DNA from: Macrostomum lignano
Lineage: Eukaryota
Direction: 5' to 3'
Assembly: GCA_002269645.1 (NCBI GenBank)
Contig: NIVC01003636.1
Coordinates: forward strand, 22,500-86,499
Length of the DNA stretch: 64,000 bases
The position numbers and the translations under genes were made by a program. Shown in pieces: positions 1 to 51,718 of the stretch; within the stretch, counting starts at the first letter, position 1; every line of letters begins with the position of its first letter. The notes below the pieces were generated by a model. That model did no database searches. It saw only the letters and a program-made list of their open reading frames with translations, and had not been told where the DNA came from.

Positions 1-424
1 GAATTAATAAATAAAAGGGGAAGCCTCATAATTCTGATTAAACACGGGGCAGGTGTCTAACAATATGAGGATTGAGGCGATAAGTGGCGAAGCGTGCACT
101 CAGCCCGGGGAGAAAAAAAGGGATTTCAGTGAGAAGAGGGAGCATGGGAAGAGGAAGAAAAGGCAGATGGGATGAGAGAAAGCGCGTTGAGGAACAGAGG
201 CAAACATCAGGTGAATAGGCGGGAAAAGATAGGGACCCAGGCCGGAGCCACACCCAATCTCAAATTAAAGCAAGACAGCAGGATGCTTGCCTCTTTTTTC
301 TGCTATAAAACATCCCATACAGTTAAAATAGGATAAAAAAACTAATTTAATCTGTAATTTCCCATATTAATCAACGCGATTGAAGCGCTATCTTTCAGTA
401 TGAAAAACTAATAATAATAATAAC

Positions 425-1021
425 CTGAAAAGACTGCCGGTTCTTAGTGACGGCGCTAGAGTGTGCGCTGGGGCCGTTTAGCAGCTCCATCAATAGGGAG
501 CCTTGCGACTGGCGCTTCTGTTGTTGTTGCTGCTGCTGCTGTTGCTGCTGCTGCTGCATAGCTGACAACTGAGCCATAGGCTGCTTATTACTATACGGCT
601 TTATCTCATCACCAGGGGCTCCGCCGTCTCCTGTAGTGCTCTGCGGAATTTCTGGCGGGCTTCTGCCCGGCCCAGGCTCCGGCGAGCGAGCGTTCGCGTC
701 TGGACTGCGGGCTACAACAGCGGCCGAGGCGGCTGATGATGAGGCTACAGCCTGCTGATAATCTGGCGGATTAGGATACAGCACAGGGCTGGCCAGAGTA
801 CTAGTTGAAGCACCGGGGCCCGTCAGCATCCTGCGCTCGACATTGGCTTCGCTAAGTTGGCTCATAAATTTATCGTGGCCGCCGAAATGCGGCTTCCAGA
901 TGTCCATCATTTTGCTGCGTATTTCTGCCGCCTTCTCCGGATTTGGTTTGCTGAAATTGCGATAGAGAACGCCCAGCTTGATCAGCTCCTGGCGGTCCCG
1001 CTCGTCCAGGTTTGCCAGCAC
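425..1021 (-). CDS. NCOA: NCOA/SRC/Taiman-like coactivator, coding exon 9 (helical segment, poly-Q, LxxLL motif); gene probably continues beyond window start
   Basis: Acceptor ccgcag|GTG at 1021, donor CAG|gttatt at 425; 597 nt, phase 0-0; contains SLLMELL (LxxLL). If the donor is not used, the frame stops at 395-397. Confidence 0.75.
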
Positions 1022-3264: not shown

Positions 3265-3661
3265 CTGCAGAGTGTGGAGAGAATAGCGGCATACGCTAAA
3301 TAACTTTATTGACACTAGATACTACCATTAGGACTTTTAGCTACTGAACATTATCACCTATATATGGTCTGTAAGACTACCTGGCTAATAAACTTTAGCA
3401 GAGAAAATTTCAATTTATAATTGTTTCCGGATGCGCAGAATGCCAATAGGAAATTCTAAGTTTCTAACTGCGCCAGGCTTGGAAAATCTGACATTTTTAA
3501 CTACTGCCAATATTAATAAATCTCTGTCTATCCCTGTAGCACTAGGCTTGAACCCGCCTCACATTTTGCTTGACTAAATGGTAACTTTCGGATTTGTTTG
3601 ATAATGTCATACATCTGGTGCCTAGTTCTCCGTCTCTCGCCTAGCCTCTTTTTTAACGTCT

Positions 3662-10227: not shown

Positions 10228-10325
10228 TTTATTTCTGACTGGATTATTCAGACTGGATGACTGCATTAGTTGATGCAGTGTCTAATTACAAAAAAAATAT
10301 TTCCAGTTAAATTTTAAGAACGCAC

Positions 10326-10923
10326 CTGCAAGAAGCGGACAGTACGCACTGCTCCGTTAACGAATAGGAATGCCTACAGGTGATATGGTCCATCACTGTC
10401 TCGTTCAATGCTCCGCTGCCGCCTCCTCTTTTAGTAGCAGTATTATTATTATTATTATTGTTTCTATTGATATGATTGCCGCAGACAGTTCCAGGAAATG
10501 GGTGCTCCAGTCCGGCCACACCAGACGAACTTCGAACGCTACTAACAGGAGATACGGATTGTGGAGCGGACTGGTGCAGCTGGTGTAAATCCTCGCTTTT
10601 AATGGAAGATTCGCCTATAGATAGGGGAGCATTGTGCGGCAACGATTGAGGCTGCTGCTGCTGCTGCTGCGGTGAAGCAGATGACGGACGGATCACCGCA
10701 GTCAGAACAGAGTCTGTCGGTTCACTTTTAACCGACATGGGATTAGGAACGGAAGGCGAATGAAGGCTAGCAGCCGGCGTTTCCGCTTGTGCCGTTGTGG
10801 CAGCAACAATGCTACACTGTTGCTGCTGCTGTTGCTGACTAGAAGACGCTAAAGAACTTGGCGTCGATACGGTAACCACCGTCTTTGGTTTCAGCAGGCA
10901 GACCAGAGACGACTGGGGAGCAC
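10326..10923 (-). CDS. NCOA: NCOA-like coding exon 5 (end of PAS-A, S/Q-rich linker, start of PAS-B)
   Basis: ctctatccag|GT...TGCAG|gtgcgt; 598 nt, phase 1-2; SSLVCLLKPK...DHITCRHSYSLTEQ. Confidence 0.75.
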
Positions 10924-10999
10924 CTGGATAGAGCGATTAATAAATAATTACAGCGATAATTTGAGATCTTTTATTATCTGCGACTCTGATGGGCGCTTT

Positions 11000-11262
11000 T
11001 AATATGATTCTGGGGCCGTAGACTATTGCGCGGCGCACCTGAAAGCTGCGTACGGCTGTTCAGTCCAAGGATTCTAGAGTCACCGCACACACCTTCAATT
11101 ACCCCAGCTAATGCTGGCAACCATTTTACAGCTGGGTGAACTGAAGCAATGCAGAGTTAAGTGTCTTGCTGAAGGACACAAATTGTTCCGATTGGTTCAG
11201 GAATCGAACCCCCGACCTTCAAGTCATGAGTCCGACGCTCTGACCACTAGGCCACAACCCCC
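11000..11262 (-). mobile_element. tRNA-derived CORE-type SINE
   Basis: Reverse strand: A-box TGGCCTAGTGG, B-box GGTTCGATTCC, then tgtgtccttcagcaagacacttaactctgcattgcttcagttcacccagctgtaaaatgg, which resembles the MIR/CORE domain; 3' end approximate. Confidence 0.75.
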
Positions 11263-12738
11263 ACTAGGTTACAACCCCTACTAGTCTACAACCCCCTACT
11301 AGGCCACAACCCCCTACTAGGCTACAACCCCCCACAAGGCTACAAACCCCACTAGGCTACAACCCCCCACAAGGCTAAAACCCCCCACTAGGCTACAACC
11401 CCCCACAAGGCTAAAACCCCCCATAAGGCTACAACCCCCACAAGGCTACAACCCCCCACAAGGCTACAACCCCCACAAGGCTACAAACCGCACTAGGCTA
11501 CAACCCCCCACAAGGCTACAAACCCCCACAAGGCTAAAACCCCCCACTAGGCTACAACCCCCCATAAGGCTACAACCCCCCACTAGGCTACAACCCCCCA
11601 CTAGGCTACAACCCCCCACTAGGCTACAACCCCCCACTAGGCTAAAACCTCCCACTAGGCTAAAACCCCCCACTAGGCTACAACCCCCCATAAGGCTACA
11701 ACCCCCCATAAGGCTACAACCCCCCACAAGGCTACAACCCCCCACAAGGCTAAACCCCCCACTAGGCTACAACCCCCCACAAGGCTACAACCCCCCACAA
11801 GGCTACAACCCCCACTAAGCTACAACCCCCACTAGGCTACAACCCCCTCACTAGGCTACAACCCCCACTAGGCTACAACCCCCCACTAGGCTACAACCCC
11901 CACTAGGCTACAACCCCCTCACTAGGCTACAACCCCCACTAGGCTACAACCCCCCACAAGGCTACAACCCCCACTAGGCTACAACCCCCACTAAGCTACA
12001 ACCCCCCACTAGGCTACAACCCCCCACTAGGCTACAACCCCATCACTAGGCTACAACCATTTACTAGGCTACAACCCCCCACTAGGCTACAACCCCCTAC
12101 TAGGCTACAACCCCCTACTAGGCTACAACCCCCTACTAGGCTACAACCCCTTACTAGGCTACAACCCCCTACTAGGCTACAACCCCCTACTAGGCTACAA
12201 CCCCTTACTAGGCTACAACGTCCTACTAGGCTACAACCCCCTACTAGGCTACAACCCCCTACTAGGCTACAACCCCCTACTAGGCTACAACCCCCTACTA
12301 GGCTACAACCCCTTACTAGGCTACAACCCCCTACTAGGCTACAACCCCTTACTAGGCTACAACGTCCTACTAGGCTACAACCCCCTACTAGGCTACAACC
12401 CCCTACTAGGCTACAACCCCCTACTAGGCTACAACCCCCTACTAGGCTACAACCCCTTACTAGGCTACAACCCCCTACTAGGCTACAACCCCCTACTAGG
12501 CTACAACCCCTTACTAGGCTACAACCCCCTACTAGGCTACAACCCCTTACTAGGCTACAACGTCCTACTAGGCTACAACCCCCTACTAGGCTACAACCCC
12601 TTACTAGGCTACAACCCCCTACTAGGCTACAACCCCCTACTAGGCTACAACCCCCTACTAGGCTACAACCCCCTACTAGGCTACAACCCCTTACTAGGCT
12701 ACAACCCTTTACTAGGCTACAACCCCCTACTAGGCTAC
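11245..12738. repeat. 17-19-bp minisatellite (c/t)actaggctacaaccccc derived from the SINE 5' end
   Basis: About 80 units; first unit is continuous with the SINE head (cactaggccacaacccc). Confidence 0.95.
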
Positions 12739-12781
12739 AGCCCGCTGACATCCAAGCAACATGCAACATACAAGCACATAC

Positions 12782-12913
12782 GCAGGCACGCAGTCGTACA
12801 CCGCTCACACAGAGTGTACATCGCATTACCCTGACCAGACCTAATCGCCAGGCATTTACACACTCTGTGATCTGTGGCGCTCACCGATGAACCGACGAAA
12901 CGAGTTTTTACCC
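12782..12913 (-). CDS. NCOA: NCOA-like coding exon 4 (PAS-A C-terminal strands)
   Basis: caacttag|GG...CTGC|gtatgt; 132 nt, phase 1-1; follows a 47-nt intron; phases close the reading frame between exons 3 and 5. Confidence 0.6.
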
Positions 12914-12960
12914 CTAAGTTGCTCTGCCCACCCACAAGCAAACCATTAATTAATACTCAC

Positions 12961-13095
12961 AAGAACTGCCTGAAGCTGGCAGTGGTTGCACTTTAATGGT
13001 GACATCTACTGGAATTGGACTGTCGCCCGGTTTCGGCGACAGCAGACGGAGTGTCAGCTGGCTGGCTAGCAGGGCTGAGCCTGCGCTAGGTTGGC
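12961..13095 (-). CDS. NCOA: NCOA-like coding exon 3 (PAS-A middle)
   Basis: cgcgcag|GC (alternative in-frame acceptor at 13080) ...TCTT|gtgagt; phase 1-1; SALLASQLTLRLLSPKPGDSPIPVDVTIKV. Confidence 0.7.
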
Positions 13096-13156
13096 CTGCG
13101 CGTGCGATTCGGGGAAATTTTTATTATATGGGATTTTTTTAGGTACAAAAAGGCTC

Positions 13157-14215
13157 GAAATGGAGACTCTATGGTTGGAAATGGGGACTCTATGGTTGGA
13201 AATGGGGACTCTATGGTTGGAAATGGAAACTCTATGGTTGGAAATGGGGACTCTATGCTTGGAAATGGAGACTCTATGGTTGGAAATGGGGACTCTATGC
13301 TTGGAAATGGAAACTCTATGGTTGGAAATGGGGACTCTATGCTTGGAAATGGGGACTCTATGCTTGGAAATGGAAACTCTATGGTTGGAAATGGGGACTC
13401 TATGCTTGGAAATGGAAACTCTATGGTTGGAAATGGGGACTCTATGCTTGGAAATGGGGACTCTATGCTTGGAAATGGGGACTCTATGCTTGGAAATGGG
13501 GACTCTATGGTTGGAAATGGGGACTCTATGGTTGGAAATGGGGACTCTATGCTTGGAAATGGAAACTCTATGGTTGGAAATGGGGACTCTATGGTTGGAA
13601 ATGGGGACTCTATGCTTGGAAATGGAGACTCTATGGTTGGAAATGGGGACTCTATGGTTGGAAATGGGGACTCTATGCTTGGAAATGGAAACTCTATGGT
13701 TGGAAATGGGGACTCTATGCTTGGAAATGGGGACTCTATGCTTGGAAATGGGGACTCTATGGTTGGAAATGGGGACTCTATGCTTGGAAATGGAAACTCT
13801 ATGGTTGAAAATGGGGACTCTATGCTTGGAAATGGAGACTCTATGGTTGGAAATGGGGACTCTATGGTTGGAAATGGGGACTCTATGGTTGGAAATGGGG
13901 ACTCTATGCTTGGAAATGGGGACTCTATGGTTGGAAATGGGGACTCTATGCTTGGAAATGGAAACTCTATGGTTGGAAATGGGGACTCTATGGTTGGAAA
14001 TGGGGACTCTATGCTTGGAAATGGGGACTCTATGGTTGGAAATGGGGACTCTATGGTTGGAAATGGGGACTCTATGCTTGGAAATGGAGACTCTATGGTT
14101 GGAAATGGGGACTCTATAGTTGGAAATTGGGACTCTATGGTTGGAAATGGAGACTCTATGGTTGGAAATGGGGACTCTATGGTTGGAAATGGGGATAGGG
14201 ATTCTATGGTTTGAA
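13157..14215. repeat. 21-bp minisatellite ggaaatgg(g/a)(g/a)actctatg(g/c)tt
   Basis: About 50 near-perfect units; explains ORFs 13066-14235, 13091-14119 and 13102-14214. Confidence 0.97.
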
Positions 14216-14250
14216 ATGGAAATGAAATTAAACAAATGAAACCAACAAAC

Positions 14251-14425
14251 CTTTCAAAGCTTCAATATAGGGCCTGATCAGCGGTATATCGTCTGGGTGA
14301 ACAATCGAACAAAATGAGGTTTTCATCAAATCCTCAACAGAATAGTCAACATAGTTGCAGATATTGGGCGACACGTAGTATATATCGGCTGATTGAGTCA
14401 CCACAATTAGAAATCCCTCGATTAC
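14251..14425 (-). CDS. NCOA: NCOA-like coding exon 2 (PAS-A core)
   Basis: ttatgcag|GTA...AAAG|gtttgt; 175 nt, phase 0-1; with exon 1 gives LGSLILDVIEGFLIVVTQSADIYYVSPNICNYVDYSVEDLMKTSFCSIVHPDD, closest by eye to the NCOA PAS-A pattern LGPLLL.ALDGFLFVVN..G.IVFVSENVT.YL.Y.QEDL.NTSVY.ILH..D. Confidence 0.85.
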
Positions 14426-14845
14426 CTGCATAAGTAACACGTTTTAAGACATATTAATATCGTCAGCTGCTGTTTTACCAGTATAAAATACATTTATAAC
14501 TAAAAAACACTTGATAACTTGTTAATCAGTAAAAACAGAATTGTTGTAGCATGGCTGCAAAAGGAATTAACTTGTAACAGTTTGAACAGATCAAAACGAC
14601 AGTAAAATAAATTATACTGACAATGTCCACACAAAAAAAAGTTGGCTTGCAGCAGTAGTAACTGACGCATAGCTAGAATATATGAATTTATGTGACCGGA
14701 TCTTACATTAGCAAAAAGTATTTGCTTAGTATGCTACTATCAGTACTAGAAAAAACACTAATTTTGGTTTACTATGAAACTAATTTGATCTATTTTTAGT
14801 GGCTAAACTTCGGATCCACTCTGAATACGAGTACCACTTTGTTAG

Positions 14846-15540
14846 TGTGCACCTCCACTTCCCTTCACTGTGCACCTCCACTTCCCTTCACTGTGCACCT
14901 CCACCTCCCTTCACTGCACATCTCCACCTCCCTTCACTGTGCACCTCCATCTCCCTTCACTGCACACCTCCACCTCCCTTCACTGTGCACCTCCATCTCC
15001 CTTCACTGTGCACCTCCATCTCCCTTCACTGTGCACCTCCACCTCCCTTCACTGTACACCTCCACCTCCCTTCACTGTACACCTCCATCTCCCTTCACTG
15101 TGCACCTCCATCTCCCTTCACTGCACACCTCCACCTCCCTTCACTGTGCACCTCCACCTCCCTTCACTGTGCACCTCCATCTCCCTTCACTGCACATCTC
15201 CACCTCCCTTCACTGCACACCTCCACCTCCCTTCACTGTACACATCCACCTCCCTTCACTGTACACCTCCACCTCCCTTCACTGTGCACCTCCATCTCCC
15301 TTCACTGTGCACCTCCATCTCCCTTCACTGCACACCTCCACCTCCCTTCACTGCACATCTCCACCTCCCTTCACTGCACACCTCCATCTCCCTTCACTGT
15401 ACACATCCACCTCCCTTCACTGTACACCTCCACCTCCCTTCACTGTGCACCTCCACCTCCCTTCACTGCACATCTCCACCTCCCTTCACTGCACACCTGA
15501 ACCTTCTTTCACTGCACACCTCTCTTCACTATACACCTTT
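14846..15540. repeat. 23-bp minisatellite cacctcca(c/t)ctcccttcactg(tg/ca/ta)
   Basis: About 29 tandem units. Confidence 0.95.
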
Positions 15541-15604
15541 ACTGTGCGCAACGTTCTATTCATTTAAACAATATTTAAAGGTTAAAACATCTTTCAAAGC
15601 TTAC

Positions 15605-15991
15605 ATCGAGAATGAGTGAGCCCAATAGTTGAGCATGATTTAGCTGTGCAGATGAAGATCTACCAGCTGATAGTAAATTAGTGGTTGATTGCGCAGCTGT
15701 TGAACTATGAGTAGCCAAATTTACTGATTCATTTAAAGCTGACACAGTTGCAGCAGCAGCACCAGCAGAAGCTTTATCACCAGGCTCTTCTTTGTTGCTA
15801 ATATCTTTACGAATTTGAACGTTATTAGGAACCTTTTCGGCTGTCTCGGCTTCAACAGATGCAATTTCACTACTATCAGTAGGATATTCGGACTTGGACA
15901 CAGTCAAAGCACTAGTTGCAGTACCGTCGCCGCAGTCGTCAGTTGAAGAAGCGACTGCAGCAGAATCCTCATCATCAGCTTCAAGGGACAT
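15605..15991 (-). CDS. NCOA: NCOA-like coding exon 1 (acidic S/A-rich N-terminus, start of PAS-A)
   Basis: ATG at 15991 preceded by an in-frame TAA two codons upstream; donor GAT|gtaagc; 387 nt, phase 0. Confidence 0.75.
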
Positions 15992-21382: not shown

Positions 21383-21640
21383 GGGCGCCCCTGTCTCTTA
21401 GTGGGAGCCCCTGGCCTACTGTAGCTTTCTTTTGGTGTGGGCATCGCTGTCTCTTGCTGGGCGCCCTATAAAGCTACACTACCTCGATCTCTTGGAATTG
21501 GCACCCCCTGTCTCTTGGCGCCCCATGCAAGTATCTCTTAGTATATAGACGCCCCTGTCTCTTGGTTGGCGCCCCTATCTCTTGGTGGGCGCCCCTGTCT
21601 CTTGGTTGGCGCCCCTGTCTCTGGGTGGGGTGCCTGTCTC
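21383..21640. repeat. ~21-bp minisatellite ggcgcccctgtctcttgg(t/a)(t/g)g, same family as 50718-51080
   Basis: Reverse complement of the 50.7-kb units. Confidence 0.85.
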
Positions 21641-23225
21641 TCTTAGACCCGTGCATGGTTGCCGCGTCCAAGGTTGCAAACGTTGGACTTTGTTTGCATC
21701 CAGTAATTATGACAGATTTGCACCTTTATACAAAATATTAGCGTACGACCTTTTGGCAACCTTACCAAGCTGTCTTGTGTAAACTCCGGCTCCACGCTCT
21801 CCCAGTCATCAGATTTGTAGGGAGCCGTCAAGTTGAACAGCCGACAAAACAGATCCCGCAGTCAGCTGAAGCCTCAGATTCGCTACTGTTAGTAGTTTTA
21901 GAAGCCTTAATTAAGCAAACTTATGCAAGACGCGTAAACAGGGTATGAAATGTCATCTAAATTAAACGGATGGAAGCATGTCACCTTAATAATCTGCCAT
22001 ATGTAGCTACATGTAGTCAGCAGATCCTCTCAAGGTCTCAAGGTGGTTAAGCAGAACGCTGCTATAGTCTCTGAACAGCGAGTTAGGAGGATTGAGGTTC
22101 TGTTTGAAATGAAGAAGCTTTGGAGCTTTAGCTACTTTGTGATGAGAGAGCAGCTCCATCCAGCCAGAGCAGAGACAAAACTTAAGTCAGTCGAGTGTGG
22201 AACAATCTTCACGCGAAACCGACATGCTAGAGTTGACACACCTGGTGTTTTTTGGATTCTTGAGCCAGAAGCAAGAAGTCGTGAGCTTGTTTCATTCTTA
22301 CCATAGAAACTGGCGTCAATTCAACTCGCGCTGAGTAACATGCTCTAGACAAAGAACCACTGAAGAAACGATACTTAGGTCCTTGGCACAGACATGTAAA
22401 TAATGCACACGACCGAGGAAGTGCTGTAAACATGTTTTATTGCACTTGCAAACAGGACAGGAGCTGGTCATGTGAGGGAAAAATACAAATGAATGTCGAG
22501 AGCAAGGAGCAGATGGAGCAACAAAAGGGGAGACGGAGACAGAAGGCACAGGCAACCAAAGGATGGGGAGCTCCCAGGTCAGAACTGGTTAGGGGAAGGC
22601 TGCTCATGACTAGGACCCAGTCTCGCCGAGCTAATAGCTCTAAAAGCAACTAAGTTGCTGTGGACTCAAACAAAAGCAGACCCAAAAAATCTCCCGTCTT
22701 AGGGGCTTATAGAAAATTCTGACATTTTGAGGCCGGGCCTCTGCAATATATTACTTCAATTCATTTTTTCTGCGCTTCATTGTGATTCTTTCCTCAAAAG
22801 TTAGGCTCTAGCAACAGGGACCCGACCAGGCAAGAGACGGAAATTTCCCGACTCGGGAAACTTTTTTTGTTGTCGTGAATAGATTTCCAATTTTTACTGG
22901 AAACTGGAGAGCCAGTTCTGGGTAGGAGTAGCCGTGGAGTCTTTGTGGCTCGGCGGTGGGTTTACAACACAGCATTAATTACTCAAAACTGATTGATTTG
23001 ATGCGGTTCAACAAGAAAGTTATTACCAGCTCGTTTATTTTTTCTGAGTCGCTAGCAATTTCTACTTAATTAGGAGTTTCTACAAGTCCAAAATTTCAAA
23101 TTTATCCTCAAAGAGTTGTTTAAGAGTGAAAATCTAATTTATGTCAGTTTTATAGTTGGATAAATAAGACTTTGCAGCTTCGGGATAAAGTAGATCCGTT
23201 ATTCATTTGACACGAGCTTGACGTC

Positions 23226-28715: not shown

Positions 28716-29705
28716 TGGACGTTTGCCTGCGAGACGTTTGCCAGCCGATGTTTGCCAGCCGAAGTTTGCCAGCCGATGTTTGCCAGCCGATATTTGCCAG
28801 CCGACGTTTGTCTGCGAGACGTTTGCCAGCCGATGTTTGCCGGCCGATGTTTGCCAGCCGACGTTTGCAGCTTGCGGGACGTTTTGCCAGCCGACGTTTG
28901 CCAGCCGAAGTTTTCCAGCCGAGGTTTGCCAGCCGACGTTTGCCAGCCGACGTTGCCAGCCGACGTTTGCCAGCCGACGTTTGCCTGCGAGACGTTTGCC
29001 AGCCGATGTTTGCCAGCAGATGTTTGCCAGCAGATGTTTGCCAGCCGACGTTTGCAGCTTGCGGGACGTTTTGCCAGCCGACGTTTGCCAGCCGAAGTTT
29101 TCCAGCCGAGGTTTGCCAGCCGACGTTTGCCAGCCGACGTTGCCAGCCGACGTTTGCCAGCCGACGTTTGCCTGCGGGACGTTTGCTTGGCTTTTGAGTT
29201 AAGTATAGGCGAGACTAATTAAGCCAATACCATTATGGATGTCTCAGTCTTTTCCCATTTAGCTTGTAAATACTTAGCTTGTTTGGCCACACTGATGGAA
29301 ATGGCCATTCCATATGGCATACATAAACACCAACTGTGACGATGGAAACTCCTATTTTGTATTTTTACCTTTATATTTAGGCAGACAAGAGCAATAACTT
29401 CAATAAGGCTAAACATTAGTTTTTTAGTAACCTAGTATATTTACATGTAACAGTAGTAGTAGGGAGCGAGCTGGAATTAGATTAGTGCTATATCCACAGT
29501 TTTCAAACGCAAGTACATGTAAGCCTAGAGGGCAACTTCTTTAACCAAAATAGCCGCCTGCTGCAAATGTCCGGCTGGCCAACGTCCCGCAGGCAAACGT
29601 CGGCTGGCAAACGTCCAGCAGGCAAACGTCGGCTGGCAAACGTCCAGCAGGCAAACGTCGGCTGGCAAACGTTGGCAGGCAAACGGGCCGGCAGGCAAAC
29701 TTCGC
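28716..29705. mobile_element. Foldback-like structure with inverted arrays of gacgtttgccagcc modules
   Basis: Plus-orientation array 28716-29185 and reverse-orientation array 29566-29705; acgtttgccagccgacgtttgcctgcgggacgtt is an exact inverted match; ~380-bp unique spacer. Confidence 0.65.
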
Positions 29706-33998: not shown

Positions 33999-36681
33999 AA
34001 TGTGAGGGTTTCACGAGAGATATTCAGACAAAGGCTCCCTAAAACACGCCCCGCACCGGGCCCCGAACTGCTACACATTATAACATTTTTTGTCAATGCA
34101 GTATTTGATTGCAAGGAAAAGTTAAAATAGTAATGGAATAAATATCTTTATTTATTTTTTTAAATATTATTATTTTTTATATTCTCGTTTTCATTATTAA
34201 ATTATAATATTATTATTTTATTAATATTATTATTAATATCACTTATTGTTCACCGAATTTTATATTTCAAAGTAAAAAAAACTAAATTTAATAAAAACTT
34301 GAAGCTTAACAGAAAACGCATTCTGAAGTGTCTTTAGTTATAGTCCAATTTGTTTTAATGTGTAGCGCTGCAGGGCGGTGCGGGGTGTGTTTTAGGGAGA
34401 CCCATTCAGACAGACATTCAAAATGATTGTCTGTAACTTCAAACAAAATTGACCCGCTTCAACCATCTTTTTGGCAAATACTTACGCAAGTGTTGGGCGT
34501 CAAATAAGCTTTAATTTATTAACTGGAGTAAAAATCCTTTTGACATACATTGATTTAAAAATTGCTTAGCAACACTAGCTCTGATTAGAAATCGCTTTAT
34601 TGTTGACTAAAATTGTTTTGATCGTAGCAGCCTAAAAGCAGATACTGGATTTAAAAATGCTTCGATTTACTCTATACGCATGTCTCAGCTTTAAAATGAC
34701 ACCTCAGGCGTCGCAAAAGACAGCTTTGATGCTGAGATATTCGACACTAAACATGCATTGCTTTGCGCAATCTCACATTCAGAAATTTCACTGATTTTTT
34801 GTCGATATTTGTGCAGTTGCCATGTCCTTGTTTTTCATCAGAATCTTGTCAAATTCTAGTCATGTCTATACGCATGTCTCAGCTTTAAAATGACACCTCA
34901 GGCATTGCAAAAGACAGCTTTGATGCTGAGATATTCGACACTAAACATTGCTTTGCTCAAACTCACATTTGGAAACTTCACTGATTTTTATTCAATATTT
35001 GTTCAGATGCTTGTCTACTTCTCCATTTATTAACCATCGCATGGAGCCTTGCTAACATAGAAGTGTATGTAGTTACAGTAAATGGGTTTTTTGTGACTCA
35101 CTTAAACTTGTTTACGCATTCTACAGCTATTCGCCGCCTTTCATTGGAGTGATTCATGGAGTCCAGTTGATAAATTTCCACAAATTGGACTGCTTCTACG
35201 TCAGATCTCAACATTTGGAACCGTCCTTGAACTATTTCAGAGTTAAGTGAGCTAATGGCATCAAATGGAAGGCTAGTGCTCGTACTTGTAAGCGAAGCAG
35301 GTTCACAATTGAAATGGTTGTATTCATGGCCATGGGATCTAAACTGATCTGTTTTACTTTCACGATCGCTTTGGTCTCAGAAGGAGCAGCAGTTGATGGA
35401 CTGAGGTGAGAAGAAGATGTGTCACGACTTGAGCTGTTTTTAGAAAATATCTTTATCCAATTAAATATTTTCATGCGGCTCCTTAGGTTGTTCCGAATTC
35501 CGAGTCTAGAAGTCAAGACAGAAAAAAAGTTAAGAACTGCTACTGTAGTCCGTAGGGATTGGAAAGCTTAGCAGTACATTAGAAATCGCCTGTTCAATCT
35601 AAAAAGTTTGAAGTACATATAGCTATTGGGTTGCAACAACAGTAGAAAAAATTCTTCCTTTTTATTTTATTCCCACCGCTTACCTCATTCCGATTTGGAT
35701 AGCAGAATTGCCACGCAAAAAAAGTAAAAACATAACAATAAACTATTTGCTTCATATTAATTGCCACTGACTGTTAATAAACGCGACGTCAATTTCTCTC
35801 AATAACAGTTGGAACATGTTTCTTGTACACTCGTATATTTATTTGAACCGCAAAGCGGTGAAAAAGTCATGATTGGTTGCCAAATGTACAAATGTACACT
35901 CACAGACTCACTGACTCAGGTACAATCTATGCAATATAAAGGCAGGAATCATTAAAAATCAAATACTTAAGACAGTTTAAGAGAAGTCCAGGTTTAAACT
36001 GGACATGACTAGAATTTGACAAGTTTCTAATGAAAAACAAGGACACGGCAGCTGCACAAATATCGACAAAAAATCAGTGAAATTTCTGAATGTGAGATTG
36101 CGCAAAGCAATGCATGTTTAGTGTCGAATATCTCAGCATCAAAGCTGTCTTTTGCAATGCCTGAGGTGTCATTTTAAAGCTGAGACATGCGTATAGACAT
36201 GACTAGAATTTGACAAGATTCTGATGAAAAACAAGGACATGGCAACTGCACAAATATCGACAAAAAATCAGTGAAATTTCTGAATGTGAGATTGCGCAAA
36301 GCAATGCATGTTTAGTGTCGAATATCTCAGCATCAAAGCTGTCTTTTGCGACGCCTGAGGTGTCATTTTAAAGCTGAGACATGCGTATAGAGTAAATCGA
36401 AGCATTTTTAAATCCAGTATCTGCTTTTAGGCTGCTACGATCAAAACAATTTTAGTCAACAATAAAGCGATTTCTAATCAGAGCTAGTGTTGCTAAGCAA
36501 TTTTTAAATCAATGTATGTCAGAAGGATTTTTACTTCAGTTAATAAATTAAAGCTTATTTGACGCCCAACACTTGCGTAAGTATTTGCCAAAAAGATGGT
36601 TGAAGCGGGTCAATTTTGTTTAAAGTTACAGACGATGGTTTTGAATGTCTGTCTGAATATCTCTCGTGAAACCCTCACATT
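33999..36681. mobile_element. Foldback element with long near-identical inverted arms containing ~195-bp subrepeats
   Basis: Left arm 33999-34030 + 34404-~35000 is the reverse complement of right arm ~36000-36681 with few mismatches. Confidence 0.85.
34031..34403. mobile_element. MULE-like MITE inserted in the foldback left arm
   Basis: TIR aggctccctaaaacacgccccgcaccg / cggtgcggggtgtgttttagggagaccc; 9-bp TSD ATTCAGACA; the right arm shows the empty site. Confidence 0.85.
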
Positions 36682-41333: not shown

Positions 41334-41824
41334 ATGTCTACTACCATAGCAGATCCTGCAACTGAGTCTGAGGACTCTAGCAGCGTAGTCATAGTCTGGA
41401 AGTCAGAGTTGTACCAGCTTCAACAGGCTGCACCAAATCCTTTACCAGTGCTGGCAGTGCATCAGCCCCCAAATCCACCAGCTCAGTATGGCCCAGAGTA
41501 TCATGGACCAATTGACAGAGCCGAAACTGAACAGCTATTAGCTAAAGCTGGCCAAGGTGCATTTTTAATACGCGATTCTAGCCGGAATCCCGGACAGTAC
41601 ACCCTGTCAATCAGATTTGATGAAGAGAATAAACATTTTCATTTGTACTATGACTCTGATGTTGGCGAGCATTGGGTTGGAGAGAAACGATTTAACAATG
41701 TGTCAGATCTAGTAGCAGATGGACTGATTCATTTCTATGTTGAGACTAGGGGTGCTCACATATTGAAAGCGTTGGCTCAGGATGCGGCCACTGTGTATGA
41801 GGAGTCGCCCTATTATACTGCTAG
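41334..41824 (+). CDS. CHN: Chimaerin (SH2-C1-RhoGAP), exon 1: SH2 domain
   Basis: YHGPIDRAETEQLL..GQGAFLIRDSSRNPGQYTLSIRF SH2 signature; in-frame TAA at 41298 upstream; donor AG|gtgagc, phase 2. Confidence 0.92.
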
Positions 41825-41924
41825 GTGAGCACATGCTTTATTTATTATCATATCAGTTTCAGTGTTTATTTTTAGACTTCATCAAACCCTTCTGGGTGCC
41901 ACAATAGTACAGCTAGTATATCCA

Positions 41925-42250
41925 ATTCCCTAACAGTACAATCTGCTCTCCTTAATAGTACCATCTGACCCCTAATAGTGCAATCTGACCCCTAATAGTG
42001 CAATCTGACCCCTAAAAGTGCAATCTGACCCCTAATAGTGCAATCTGACCCCTAATAGTACAATCCACCCCAACTAATAGTACAATCCACCCCTCTAATG
42101 TACAAATCACCCCAACTAATAGTACAATCCACCCCAACTAATAGTACAATCCACCCCCTCTAATAGTACAATCCACCCCCTCTAATAGTACAATCCACCC
42201 CCTCTAATGGTGCAATCCACCCTCTAACACTACAATCCACTCCACTAATA
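41925..42250. repeat. ~20-22-bp minisatellite ctaatagt(a/g)caatc(t/c)(g/a)(a/c)ccc in chimaerin intron 1
   Basis: Tandem degenerate units. Confidence 0.85.
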
Positions 42251-42328
42251 CCAAAATCACTTTTCCAATCATAATATCTTAGCAAGGCAATGAATAAATT
42301 GCTCCATGAATACCGCCACGCCACTCAG

Positions 42329-42809
42329 GTACTACACTCTACAAAGTCGGGGCTGGCGCCGTAGGCTCGCGCCAAATTCAGCTGCCGGCGCCAGCGCTAG
42401 CGCGGCAAACTCTGGCGCTAATCTAATCAGACGAGACTCCCGTCTGCTGTACCTGCAACAGCAGGAGCAGCGCCACAGGCGAGCCAGCGAAGATGGCGCC
42501 GCATCCGCGACAAACAATTCCTCAGTGTCATCTCTGTCGCCTAGCATAGCGGCCCCCGTCGCTGTGGTCGTATCTTCCCTGTCTCCGGCTATTCCATCGA
42601 CTAATTCAACTCTGGCATCGGCCTCATCTGGACGAGTTGACGATCGAGATAGTAGCAGTGCAGATGGTGGCAGTAGTTTGAGTTTGAGCTCGGCTAGCTG
42701 TTGCGATACGGGCAAATATGAGAAGGCGCATTGTTTTCGTTTGACTACGTTTAAAGGGCCGCATTGGTGCGATTTCTGCCAGCACTTCATGTGGGGACTT
42801 ATTGCACAG
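42329..42809 (+). CDS. CHN: Chimaerin exon 2: Ser-rich linker + first half of C1 domain
   Basis: Acceptor ccactcag|G gives phase 2 into the ORF frame; [32 protein letters not shown]|gttagc. Confidence 0.85.
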
Positions 42810-42943
42810 GTTAGCGGGGTCTTTGTTTATTGCTGGTTTATTTATGTGCGGCTGGCTTCTTGGCATGCTTAAGCGCAACCTAGGGATTCACCCGGCCGTT
42901 TCTATTGGCAGCACACACATGTAAGTCGCTATTGGACGGAATA

Positions 42944-44249
42944 CGAGGGGCACTAGATAAGTTTCTAGCTGCGGTCGACATGTAACAGTTATAAAGATGA
43001 AACTTTCAGAGCTTTTCAAAGTACTCTCCATCAGCTTGGATGCACCGCCTCATCCGCTCAAACCAAGTTTCAAAGCAGTGGCGCCACTCTGAGTGGGATA
43101 CCCCCTCAACGGCCGATCTATAGGCATCAACAGCCTCTTCGGCGGAGGAAAATCGGCACCCTCGCATGGAATTCTTGATGAATGGAAATAAAAAAAAGTC
43201 ACACGGTGCCAGGTCAGGTGAATATGGTGGATGACTGAGCTGCTGGAAGCCCACCGTCTGTAGAAACTGTCGAGTTCGATTCGCCGTGTGCGCACTGGCG
43301 TTGTCCTGGTGCAGCCAGAGACCTCGAACGCCGCACTTTGGCCGCGCCTCTTTAAGGCTGCTGATGACACGCGGCAGGCAGACGGTGCAGTACCAATCTG
43401 CAGTCACTGTGCGCTGGCTCTCGAGTGCTACAGTCGCAATGTGGCCAGTCTTTCGGAAGAAAGTTGCCACCATTTGCTTGCCAGTGCTCCGACCCCTGAC
43501 AACCTTGGTCGGCGGGGCTTCATCTTCAAAAGCCCACACACGCGACTGGCATTTCCGCTCGGGTTCGTAGCAATACACCCACGTTTCGTCACATGTGACA
43601 ATGTCTGTGACAGACTTCGACGTCCCTCCGCCAAACCTGTCCAGCATTTCCTGGCACCAGCTCATGCGGGCCTGCTTCTGCTCGGTGGTGAGCAAATGCG
43701 GCACCCAGCGACTGGTCAGCTTGCGGACAGCGAGGTGATCACGAAGGATAGAAGCGACTGTCGGCGATGAGATTCCAAGACATGCCTCAATCGTTTGATA
43801 CGTCACTCGCCGATCAGCCTCTATCATGCGCCGCACGCGGTCGATAGTTTCAGGTGTCGTCACTGAAACAGGTCGGCCGGTTCGACCTTCGTCTTCCAAG
43901 CTGTCTCGGCCACGCTTGAACTCCCGGAACCAGGCGGTGACGGTGGCGATGGATGGCGCAAGGTTAGGAAAGGCAGCAGACAGCCGCTCGTGGCACTGGT
44001 GAAATGTCAAGCCGCTCTTAAAATCGTAGAAAATCATGGCACGAAAGTGTTCACGATTGAGCTCCATTACAGTGCTGAAAGAGTCACAAACCTTGTTGAG
44101 ATAAAATGCGACAGTGAGAGAATGGTGACAATTAGGTGCATGAAACTTTGGGGACCATGATAAAACTTCTAATTCAATATGCTCAGAAAATATGGCCTAA
44201 TTTGAATAAACGGTTTGACCGCAGCTAAAAACTTATCTAGTGACCCTCG
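42944..44249 (-). mobile_element. Full-length mariner transposon (1306 bp), irritans/Bytmar1-like termini
   Basis: TA TSD at 42942-42943 and 44250-44251; 33-bp TIRs 31/33 identical (cgaggg.cactagataagttt.tagctgcggtc). Confidence 0.95.
43006..44067 (-). CDS. Mariner transposase, DD34D, intact 353 aa
   Basis: HTH N-terminus, WVPHLL, IVTCDETW, LHQDNASAH, YSPDLAPCD; 34 residues between the 2nd and 3rd D. Confidence 0.97.
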   Translation of the reverse strand: MELNREHFRAMIFYDFKSGLTFHQCHERLSAAFPNLAPSIATVTAWFREFKRGRDSLEDEGRTGRPVSVTTPETIDRVRRMIEADRRVTYQTIEACLGISSPTVASILRDHLAVRKLTSRWVPHLLTTEQKQARMSWCQEMLDRFGGGTSKSVTDIVTCDETWVYCYEPERKCQSRVWAFEDEAPPTKVVRGRSTGKQMVATFFRKTGHIATVALESQRTVTADWYCTVCLPRVISSLKEARPKCGVRGLWLHQDNASAHTANRTRQFLQTVGFQQLSHPPYSPDLAPCDFFLFPFIKNSMRGCRFSSAEEAVDAYRSAVEGVSHSEWRHCFETWFERMRRCIQADGEYFEKL

Positions 44250-44370
44250 TAGTAGTCACGTGACTTGGCAACGTGTGTGTTGCCAATAGAGACGGCCGAG
44301 TGATTCCCAAGGTTGTGCATGTATGGTTCTTGGTGTTTGTAGGAAGAGTTCAAAGGTCAGGATATGTAGC

Positions 44371-45630
44371 TTCAGGGAGTGGTTTATGGGTTCAGTGACC
44401 GATGGTTGCTTCAGGGAGTGGTTGATGGGTTCAGTGACCGATGGTTGCTTCAGGGAGTGGTTGATGGGTTCAGTGACCGATGGTTGCTTCAGGGAGTGGT
44501 TGATGGGTTCAGTGACCGATGGTTGCTTCAGGGAGTGGTTGATGGATTCAGTGACTCATGGTTGCTTCAGGGACTGATGTTGCTTCAGTGACTGATGGTT
44601 AATGGGTTCAGTGACTGGGTGGTTGCTTCAGGGACTGATGGTGGCTTCAGGGACTGATGTTGGCTTCAGGGACTGATGTTGGCTTCAGGGACTGATGGTG
44701 GCTTCAGGGACTGATGGTGGCTTCAGGGACTGATGGTAGCTTCAGTGACTGATGGTTAATGGGTTCGGTGACTGATGGTTGCTTCAGGGACTGGTGGTTG
44801 CTTCAGGGACTGATGGTTGCTTCAGGGACTGATGTTGGCTTCAGGGACTGATGGTGGCTTCAGGGAGTGATGGTTGCTTCAGGGACTGATGGTTGCTTCA
44901 GGGACTGATGGTTGCTTCAGGGACTGATGTTGGCTTCAGGGACTGATGGTGGCTTCAGGGAGTGATGGTTGCTTCAGGGACTGATGGTGGCTTCAGGGAG
45001 TGATGGTTGCTTCAGGGACTGATGGTGGCTTCAGGGACTGATGGTGGCTTCAGAGAGTGATAGTGGCTTCAGGGACTGATGGTTGCTTCAGGGACTGATG
45101 GTGGCTTCAGGGACTGATAGTGGCTTCAGGGAGTGATAGTAGCTTCAGGGAGTGATGGTGGCTTCAGGGACTGATGGTGGCTTCAGGGAGTGATAGTAGC
45201 TTCAGAGAGTGGTGGTTGCTTCAGTGACTGATGGTTGCTTCAGGGAGTGGTTGATGGGTTCAGGGACTCATTGTTGCTTCAGGGACTGATGTTTGCTTCA
45301 GGGACTGATGGTAGCTTCAGGGACTGATGGTTGCTTCAGGGACTGATGGTGGCTTCAGGGACTGATGGTAGCTTCAGGGACTGATGGTGGCTTCAGGGAC
45401 TGATGGTGGCTTCAGGGACTGATGGTTGCTTCAGGGACTGATGGTGGCTTCAGGGACTGATGGTTGCTTCAGGGACTGATGGTGGCTTCAGGGACTGATG
45501 GTAGCTTCAGGGACTGATGGTGGCTTCAGGTACTGATGGTGGCTTCAGGGACTGATGTTGGCTTCAGGGACTGATGGTAGCTTCAGTGACTGATGGTTGC
45601 TTCAGGGACTGATGGTAGCTTCAGAGAGTG
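44371..45630. repeat. Composite minisatellite: 39-bp units then ~20-bp cttcagggactgatggt(g/t)g units
   Basis: Tandem units; the 20-mer looks like half of the 39-mer. Confidence 0.93.
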
Positions 45631-46094
45631 ATAGTACTGCGTTCAGTGTGTGATCTGATCAGTGTGTAAGGATGATGGGATATTGCAGTTTTTCAAAGCA
45701 AATTACATGCATAGTGCATATTGAAAGCAATTTATCCGATATGTTTAACCAGCATACTGCAGTGAATATGGTGTATGCAAATATTTCATCCCAACTATCA
45801 AAACGGACTCTTATTTTCAACATTTTAATGGTTCTATCAATTTTGGTTTCATTAAATTTGCCAAGCTGTAAAGTTACTCCTGTATGCTGCCCATGTGTAG
45901 CCTGCGGCATCTCTCACTCTCGCTGTGTCCCAATTTTCCTGATTCCCACCATCAGCTTGGGATGGTTCTTCCAAGCACCTAATTTTGATCTAAACCACAT
46001 ATTTATAAAATATAAGCACCCTGTCTGATCCTCCTGGTGCACTCTTGTTTAGAACGTTGAACGAAAAAATGGACTGAGGATTAAGACTTGTTAT

Positions 46095-46550
46095 AATAGA
46101 TCCCAAATACTCCCAGATCCCCAATTCTCCCAGATCCTCAATCTTTCCAGATCCTCAGTCTTTCCAGATCCTCAATTCTCCCAGATCCTTAATCCTCCCA
46201 GGCCCTCAATCTTCCCAGATCCTCAATCTTCTTAGATCCTCAATTATTCTCCCAGATCCTAAATTCTCTCAAATCCTCAATTCTTCCCAGATCCTCAATC
46301 TTCCCAGATCCTTAATCCTCCTAGATATTCAATTCTCTCAGATCCTCAAACTTCCCAAATCCCCAATTTTCCTAGATTCTCAATCCTCTCAGATATTCAA
46401 TCTTCCCAGATCCTCAATTCTCCCAGATCCTCAAACCTCACAGATCCACAATTCTTCCAGATCCTCAATCTTCCTAGATCCTCAATCTTCCCAGATCCTC
46501 AATCTTCCAGATCCTCAATCTTCCCAGATCCTCAAACTTCCCAGATCCTC
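46095..46550. repeat. ~17-18-bp minisatellite cccagatcctcaat(c/t)ct, ending just before the chimaerin exon 3 acceptor
   Basis: Tandem degenerate units. Confidence 0.88.
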
Positions 46551-46601
46551 AGTCAACCCAGTGTCGCCACCAACTACAGAGACCCCCAAAACCGTTCTCA
46601 G

Positions 46602-47321
46602 GGCTTCCGCTGCACCGACTGCGGCTTCCAAGCCCACCGTCGTTGCGCTGACCGAGTGCCGCCGCACTGCCTGCCAGATATGAAGTACGTGAAGCGCGTG
46701 TTCGGGTCCGATCTGACCACCCTGGTCAAGGCCACGCCGCCCACCGCGGTACCCGGCGTTCCGGCCGTGCTCGAACGCTGTGTAGACGAGATCGAATCCC
46801 GCGGCCTGGACTCCGAAGGCCTGTACCGGGTGGCCGGTTTTCACGACGATATCGAAGTAATTAAACTGGCATTCGATAAGGAGACACTAGATAATCCTGT
46901 GGATTTGTCACGGTTTGACGACGTTAACACCGTGGCCAGCGTTTTGAAGGCCTACCTGCGCTCGCTGCCCATCCCTGTGATCACCTACGATATGTACGAC
47001 AAGTTCCTGGCTGTTGTACGTCGGGAAGGCGACGATTCAACGGCGCAGTTGAACGCTAGCCTACGCCAGTGCGTGTCGGAGCTTCCGCCGGCGCATCGGC
47101 AGACTCTGAATTATCTGTGCCGACATCTGCACCGCGTGGCTGCTAGGCAACGGATCAACATGATGTCGCCAGAGAATCTGGCTATAGTGTTGGCCCCGAC
47201 TCTGCTAAGATCGCCAAGCGCCGAATACATTGCAGACCCGTTGCGCGTGTTGAATAATGCCAAGTATGAGAGATTGGTAGTTGAGATGCTGATATCGGAG
47301 TATGAGACTGTGTTTGCGTGA
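46602..47321 (+). CDS. CHN: Chimaerin exon 3: second half of C1 + RhoGAP domain
   Basis: ccgttctcag|GFRCTDCGFQAHRRC...C; VFGSDLTTLVK, EGLYRVAG (arginine finger), ENLAIVLAPTL; stop at 47321; 563 aa total. Confidence 0.95.
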   Translation, partial: GFRCTDCGFQAHRRCADRVPPHCLPDMKYVKRVFGSDLTTLVKATPPTAVPGVPAVLERCVDEIESRGLDSEGLYRVAGFHDDIEVIKLAFDKETLDNPVDLSRFDDVNTVASVLKAYLRSLPIPVITYDMYDKFLAVVRREGDDSTAQLNASLRQCVSELPPAHRQTLNYLCRHLHRVAARQRINMMSPENLAIVLAPTLLRSPSAEYIADPLRVLNNAKYERLVVEMLISEYETVFA

Positions 47322-50717: not shown

Positions 50718-51080
50718 AACCAAGAGACAAGGGCGCCCCACCAAAAGACAGGGGCGCCCTCCAAGAGACAGGGGCACCCTCCAAGAGACAGGGGCGTCCA
50801 CCAAGAGACAGGGGCACCCTCCAAGAGACAGGGGCGCCCACCAAGAGACAGGGACACCCTCCAAGAGACAGGGACACCCTCCAAGAGACTGGGGCGCCCA
50901 CCAAGAGACAGGGGCGTCCACCAAGAGACAGGGGCACCCTCCAAGAGACAGAGGTGCCCACCAAGAGACAGGGACACCCTCCAAGAGACAGGGGCACCCT
51001 CCAAGAGACAGGGGGCGCCCACCAAGAGACAGGGACGCCATCCAAGAGACATGGGGCGCCAACCAAGAGACAGGGGCGCC
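50718..51080. repeat. 21-bp minisatellite ccaagagacaggggc(g/a)ccc(a/t)
   Basis: About 17 units; same family as 21383-21640, inverted. Confidence 0.93.
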
Positions 51081-51718
51081 CGCTAACACTGAGCTACGGC
51101 TCCCTTAGAGTTATAAACATTCATGGTTGCGTTACTGTATGTCAAGAATCACTAAGCAGTTGAAAATGCGCAGAAGATTCTAGGCAGTGAATAGACCGTA
51201 AAAAGCTTAATAAAGAAAACAACTTCACCGCACAGCGCCACTAAAGTCGTAACAAGAGAAACCTGGCAAAATGCTAAACAAAATTGAGAGAGAGAGAGAG
51301 CTCGATTTCTTTCGCCGAGCTGAAAAAATAGTGCCCGGGTGTATGCATAAACATATACGGTATATGTGGCAAGAAGTGTTTCTTCTTAAAAAGAAAGAAT
51401 CCACGTGTGCCGCTATTGCCAAAGGCGCGACTCGCCTCGCGTACTCATTCTGCTTCCAACTAGGCTAGGCTAGAAAATACAGTGAGAGAGAGAGAGGGTG
51501 AGAGAGATTTAGGTACAGAGTGAAGGCGTATTGCAAACATTCTAGGCTTGAGTATATATGCACACACTGTGTATGCCAAACAGCCATTTCCCTGCTTGTA
51601 GTTTTCCTGCAGCCTGGTAAATTACTTTTGCAACACTATTAAATAATGAAGAAGCAGCATTTGATTTATCGATAGATTGATTGAATCCCAACATCAGTCA
51701 GGACGGCAACAATAGATC

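Follow-up and report, generated by a model that had tools for sequence, protein, structure and literature searches.

A minisatellite of 17-19-nt units with a probable origin in the 5' end of an adjoining tRNA-like SINE in Macrostomum lignano

Tandem repeats that derive from SINEs have already been described in squamates, from human Alu and from mouse B1. The squamate SINE-derived satellites (sSats) reported by Vassetzky et al. 2023 consist of an array and a longer terminal unit that reaches the SINE terminus (PMC10702118). Their units measure 67-215 nt and mostly represent the 3' part of the head, the body or the LINE-derived region, and they are found at tens to thousands of loci, with subtelomeres being favoured (PMC10702118). 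Among human minisatellites and satellites, 23% are TE-derived, many of them from Alu (PMC3389668). The Alu-derived minisatellites (Jurka and Gentles 2006; Ahmed and Liang 2012, PMC3389668) arise by in-place expansion of a SINE segment, and their initiation has been ascribed to short direct repeats or slippage, followed by slow local growth. In mouse, a VNTR family described in 1998 derives from SINE B1, as listed in PMC9659126; according to that listing, a 6-nt motif internal to B1 (GGCAGA) has expanded at multiple loci. Lastly, the amphibian families Xenopus satellite 1/OAX, Hy/PolIII and PolIII/TAN are presented in PMC10702118 and PMC9659126 as tandem tRNA-like Pol III promoter sequences with units of 200-750 nt, most of which carry both A and B boxes; in the accounts given there, Hy/PolIII reportedly has no box B, and in vitro transcription is reported for PolIII/TAN.

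The locus described here was found in a 64-kb stretch of M. lignano DNA, referred to below as the window, and comprises a minisatellite of 83 units next to a SINE-like element, both read from the minus strand. As in the squamate sSats, a tandem array from part of a tRNA-derived SINE has a terminal unit that continues into the SINE, subvariants alternate in higher-order patterns, and the longer blocks are the more homogeneous ones (PMC10702118). Unlike the sSats, the array consists of units of only 17-19 nt that represent the outermost 5' part of the SINE, is probably intronic, is known from one locus and belongs to an invertebrate host. The in-place expansion is shared with the Alu-derived minisatellites, which differ in being 7SL-derived, in their mean size (~2.3-2.4 units versus 83) and in that any Alu region can act as the seed (PMC3389668). 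The mouse B1 family is similar in that a short G-rich motif within a SINE has grown into a long array, whereas that motif, as listed, is not the promoter-bearing 5' end (PMC9659126). Compared with the amphibian families, the units of the present array hold at most an A box. The features that distinguish this locus are thus the 17-19-nt unit from the extreme 5' end, the high copy number and the invertebrate host.

TRF returned a single array at 11246..12743, with a period of 18, 83.8 copies, 91% matches and a score of 2262. Unit parsing was anchored on the TAGCCT core, with the SINE head counted as the 84th unit, and it resolved 83 units of 17-19 nt at 11263..12743 (minus strand) with the consensus GGGGGTTGTAGCCTAGT(G/A). 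Most units are 18 nt long (n=66), while 14 have 17 nt and three have 19 nt. A first-pass annotation of this DNA had described ~80 units over ~1.5 kb, with G and A alternating at the last unit base, and all three points agree with the parsing. When the 64-kb window was scanned with the consensus GGGGGTTGTAGCCTAGTG at up to three mismatches, 85 matches were obtained versus 0.03 expected from shuffled sequence, and 84 of these fall within 11245-12745 on the minus strand. The single outlier, at 3540-3557, was considered as a second unit-like site and rejected as a chance match that is not tRNA-like. The units run head-to-tail on the minus strand, in phase with the SINE head that starts at 11262.

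The element downstream of the array begins at 11262 (minus strand) with GGGGGTTGTGGCCTAGTGGTCAGAGCG, exactly as first read. Its head is a degenerate tRNA of 64 nt that starts with GGGGGTTGTGGCCTAGTGG (11199..11262, minus strand) and contains an A box, TGGCCTAGTGG, at 11244-11254 and a B box, GGTTCGATTCC, at 11200-11210, with an A-B spacing of 44 nt; this B box is the only one on both strands of the window. The Rfam tRNA model aligns end to end with the head at 18.7 bits (E=0.33 in a 501-nt search), which falls below the gathering score of 29, and ARAGORN called no tRNA at this position. By sequence, the anticodon arm, the variable loop and the T arm look like those of elongator tRNA-Met. About 80 nt into the element follows a candidate CORE-like central domain of 60 nt with a MIR-type core (11121..11180, minus strand). 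It shares 45/61 identities, at the same relative position, with a mammalian MIR consensus, and this alignment scored 48, versus 17.7 +/- 2.1 (maximum 26) for shuffles; as the consensus did not come from a database, the apparent CORE-SINE resemblance is to be taken as a lead. The CpG-rich body and tail are placed, provisionally as to their 3' limit, at 10930..11120 (minus strand), and no T4 terminator occurs on the 3' side until 10297, i.e., for 965 nt.

A comparison of the 5' flank of the array with the region 3' of the element for a target-site duplication gave no direct repeat of at least 7 nt. The window holds one copy of the SINE, and no further copies were found in protein collections queried with the antisense ORF of the SINE or in metagenome, genome and viral collections scanned with DNA patterns, from all of which the species itself is absent. 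Scans of collections lacking the species for 18-mer arrays elsewhere, with the array peptide at the protein level and with DNA patterns, were empty as well, the mariner and array ORFs had no exact match in collections without the source species, and the literature held no match to the SINE or unit sequence strings. The best reading of the element is that of a tRNA-derived, CORE-like SINE, with one copy in the window and no target-site duplication found.

Several local observations connect the array to this SINE. The array consensus and SINE nucleotides 1-18 are identical at 17/18 positions, the sole difference being tRNA position 9, which is A in the array and G in the SINE. Array and SINE share strand and phase and are joined with no spacer. 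The unit starts with the G5 run of the SINE and ends at the GG of the A box, and 17-mer units are present, two of which adjoin the SINE. No units occur 3' of the SINE, and elsewhere in the window there is only the chance match mentioned above. At the distal end, the first base of the array after the unique flank is position 1 of a unit (...GATGTCAGC followed by GGGCTGTAGCC), and this end resembles an ordinary flank-to-SINE junction. The earlier proposal that the first 18 nt of the SINE seeded the array is supported by the identity, the common strand and phase, the restriction of the array to the 5' side and the distal start at position 1, and these observations give good local support to a derivation of the array from the SINE head. 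The alternative that the SINE landed within an array already in place was also considered, and it is excluded because units are found neither 3' of the SINE nor elsewhere in the window.

The pentamer GTCAG is present just 5' of the array (GATGTCAGC; 12744-12752, minus strand) and again right after the unit inside the SINE (GTGGTCAGAGC; 11238-11245, minus strand). It was rejected as the cause of the duplication since the array units do not contain GTCAG, and its presence in both flank and SINE is probably a coincidence. As for hairpins or slipped structures, neither strand of the array folds better than shuffled sequence.

Internally, the array is organized in blocks. The distal block (12098..12745, minus strand) is the most homogeneous one and consists of 36 exact 18-mers ending in GTA, with A (n=22), B (n=9) and C (n=3) as the main variants. 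Their order, DAEBAAAABACBABAABAAAACBABAAAACBAABAA, contains higher-order repeats of 8 and 11 units, and self-identity within the block peaks at lags of 144 and 198 nt. The middle block (11813..12097, minus strand) has 16 units of 17, 18 or 19 nt ending in GTG, among which a 17+19+17+18 pattern occurs twice in succession. The proximal block (11333..11812, minus strand) is made up of 27 heterogeneous units, including CCTTGTG, CCTTATG and GTTTT variants, and carries five T4 runs (11377-11380, 11413-11416, 11536-11539, 11644-11647 and 11662-11665). Between this block and the SINE lie four units (11263..11332, minus strand) that all differ from one another (TAGCC, TGGCC, TAGAC and TAACC) and are the most varied of the array; one of the four retains the G of the SINE at tRNA position 9.

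Over the whole array, higher-order repeats of 4, 8 and 11 units are seen. Such a pattern is the trace of unequal exchange and slippage in established arrays, and the repeats at this locus point to unequal exchange that was local. The first-pass annotation had seen a minisatellite in the course of being born; with three sub-blocks and higher-order repeats, the array is instead mature and not nascent.

The array probably lies within an intron, in sense orientation. A putative phase-0 intron at 10913..15604 (minus strand), with the donor GAT/GTAAGC and the acceptor ctccccAG/TCG, would join two polyQ/Ser-rich minus-strand ORFs, namely, 15575-15991 and 10307-10879, with phase 0 at both ends, and it is the fit of the splice sites together with this phase that makes the intronic placement probable. 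The G-rich strand of the array is the sense strand of these flanking ORFs, which agrees with the placement proposed at first. The putative intron measures 4.7 kb, 68% of which consists of three unrelated minisatellites (a 23-mer, a 21-mer and the 18-mer), and the end of the SINE lies ~20-80 nt from the putative acceptor. The NCOA label initially given to the host gene is unverified. Pfam recognized no family in four polyQ-rich minus-strand ORFs, nor in a submitted subset of the minus-strand ORF segments from 15.5-41.5 kb, each 45 aa or longer. The ORF at 395-1021 (minus strand; 208 aa) has one LXXLL motif and a polyQ tract; it gave no Pfam match and no homologue among 1.84 billion representative proteins.

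The surroundings of the locus are rich in minisatellites. In total, there are 22 arrays (periods of 12-45 nt), which together span 16.2 kb, i.e., 25% of the 64-kb window. A G/C run of at least 4 nt is present in the unit of 9 of the 20 independent array families, versus 1.35 +/- 1.12 (maximum 7 in 5000 trials; P<2e-4) among random non-array segments of the same lengths. This region hence forms minisatellites readily, and preferentially from units with a G/C run. Because of this enrichment, the G5 run of the SINE head, and not the promoter box, is probably the feature that predisposed the head to array formation, with the A box as a passenger. The idea that a promoter element had been the cause of seeding is, by the same local statistic, not favoured. 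Human G-rich minisatellites, e.g., those of the Jeffreys core type and CEB1, have a G run in each unit and show strand asymmetry, and CEB1 forms canonical G4s. The G/C-run enrichment of the window arrays resembles this bias; unlike CEB1, the present array has loops of 12-13 nt between its G runs.

Other repeats and genes of the window are noted here in their own right. The 20-mer CGCCCCTGTCTCTTGGTTGG forms arrays at 21383-21641 and 50718-51081 in opposite orientation and thus represents a dispersed minisatellite family, which may be carried by a mobile element. Arrays of the 14-mer GACGTTTGCCAGCC at 28718-29186 and 29563-29700 are reverse complements of each other, ~380 bp apart and foldback-like. 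An inverted repeat of 611 bp with 96.7% identity (34404-35010 and 36048-36658) flanks ~1 kb and could be either a foldback element or the two termini of a DNA transposon. A mariner/Tc1-like element with ~100-bp terminal inverted repeats (42873-44318) lies between the exons of a chimaerin-like gene; its transposase ORF (43006-44067, minus strand) is intact, encodes 353 aa and contains HTH_48, DDE_3 and Transposase_1 domains. The chimaerin-like gene itself (41334-47321, plus strand) includes an SH2 exon (41334-41828), a probable C1-containing ORF (42306-42872) and a RhoGAP exon (46656-47321), and the best protein matches to the chimaerin exon come from the annelids Capitella and Helobdella, with 54-55% identity.

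Taken as a whole, the locus is likely to have arisen by duplication of the SINE head in place, with growth by slippage and unequal exchange into a neutral intronic VNTR, and we hold this explanation with good confidence. A tRNA-derived CORE-like SINE would have landed in an intron of the minus-strand gene, close to the 3' end of that intron and in the sense orientation. The first 17-18 nt of the SINE, from the G5 run to the GG of the A box, would then have undergone a local duplication, with slipped-strand mispairing between two G stretches as the most likely mechanism; a slip between the G5 run and the A-box GG would give a duplication of 17 nt, on a GG microhomology of just 2 nt. Replication slippage and unequal exchange may subsequently have expanded the array to 83 units, leaving the sub-blocks and higher-order repeats behind. 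In this scheme the G run would have made the SINE head a good seed, as the local statistic suggests, and the A box would have been carried along by accident. Neutrality of this intronic VNTR is the most likely assumption, and no Pol III, insulator or small-RNA role would be expected. It is also conceivable, though rather unlikely, that the first head repeats were laid down during retrotransposition itself, with slippage and unequal exchange acting only in the later expansion. Once at the 5' end of the RNA, reverse transcriptase would in that case have switched back to the internal GG at positions 18-19, making several further copies of the first 17 nt. Such a route would fit the position of the unit, which matches the very 5' terminus of the SINE give or take one or two bases of the G run, as well as the likeness of the distal array end to a flank-to-SINE junction, and Ahmed and Liang link the initiation of many TE-derived tandem repeats, possibly, to retrotransposition (PMC3389668). 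However, the G5 run is terminal in any case, so slippage after insertion predicts the identical boundary, and a literature search for a precedent of an 18-nt array from a SINE 5' terminus found none. Slippage and a template jump yield the same product, and a single locus does not separate them. A broader version, in which SINE heads starting with a G run would be recurrent minisatellite seeds through template jumping at insertion, and the resulting arrays would bind TFIIIC or G-run splicing factors and affect the host gene, is regarded as quite unlikely; if true, it would tie retrotransposition directly to minisatellite birth and gene regulation.

The remaining readings fare worse. That array and SINE-like end form a composite mobile element with an internal minisatellite and arrived together, in the way that bivalve satellites travel on MITEs or Helitrons, is considered very unlikely. 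Other minisatellites of the window are indeed dispersed or paired, i.e., the 20-mer and the inverted 14-mer arrays, but the 18-mer unit has no second locus there, the unit itself is SINE sequence, the higher-order repeats show local growth, and a Pol III transcript could not transport an array of 1.5 kb that contains T4 runs. Highly improbable, too, is the interpretation of the array as functional Pol III/TFIIIC DNA, with a ladder of A boxes that gives staggered starts or insulator activity, tRF-5-like RNAs or G-quadruplexes, as the first-pass annotation had envisaged. In type-2 Pol III promoters the B box is the main anchor of TFIIIC and usually lies ~30-60 nt from the A box, and ETC sites of the insulator type are B-box sites. 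Strict TRGCNNAGTGG boxes do occur in 21 units and in the SINE, versus two other matches in the remaining window, and the G-rich strand is, as stated above, the sense strand of the flanking ORFs. Even so, the supposed ~80 A-box copies shrink to 21/83 units by this strict definition, most of them in the middle block: the 36 distal units have lost G18, the CCTTGTG variants have lost A14, and the loss of the box from 62/83 units argues against selection for it. None of the four SINE-adjacent units has a strict box, the first and second upstream ones are 149 and 185 nt away from the single B box, and the five terminator-like T4 runs of the proximal block sit between the upstream strict boxes and the SINE. 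With the strict A boxes this far away, one B box and T4 runs in between, a working ladder of starts or an insulator made of A boxes only is unlikely. The array is not particularly G4-prone either: no motif has loops of up to 7 nt, eight are found at up to 12 nt and 14 long-loop G4-type motifs at up to 13 nt. G4Hunter scores average 1.03 and exceed 1.5 in 17% of the 25-nt windows, and hairpin propensity was likewise not found. A tRF-5-like output is unsupported: what the array would yield is intronic RNA, as opposed to processed tRNA. The chance that array and SINE adjoin by coincidence, or that the array is a coding repeat (GGCSLV)n, is close to negligible: the in-phase identity of 17/18 is too close for coincidence, and the coding repeat, although a 264-aa ORF traverses the distal block, was rejected because the frame is lost at units of 17 and 19 nt, its repeat peptide also having no homologue in a protein search.

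With duplication of the SINE head in place as the preferred explanation, the main interest of the locus is that the founder sequence, the 5' end of the SINE, is still present in phase at the edge of an 83-unit array, so that the seed can be read directly. The locus may serve as a teaching case and, if the species is studied further, as a marker for array length polymorphism. The wider context, in which minisatellites make up a quarter of the window and about two thirds of one intron, may matter more than the locus itself. If the G/C-run enrichment and the minisatellite density hold genome-wide, M. lignano would be a good system for studying what drives minisatellite formation.
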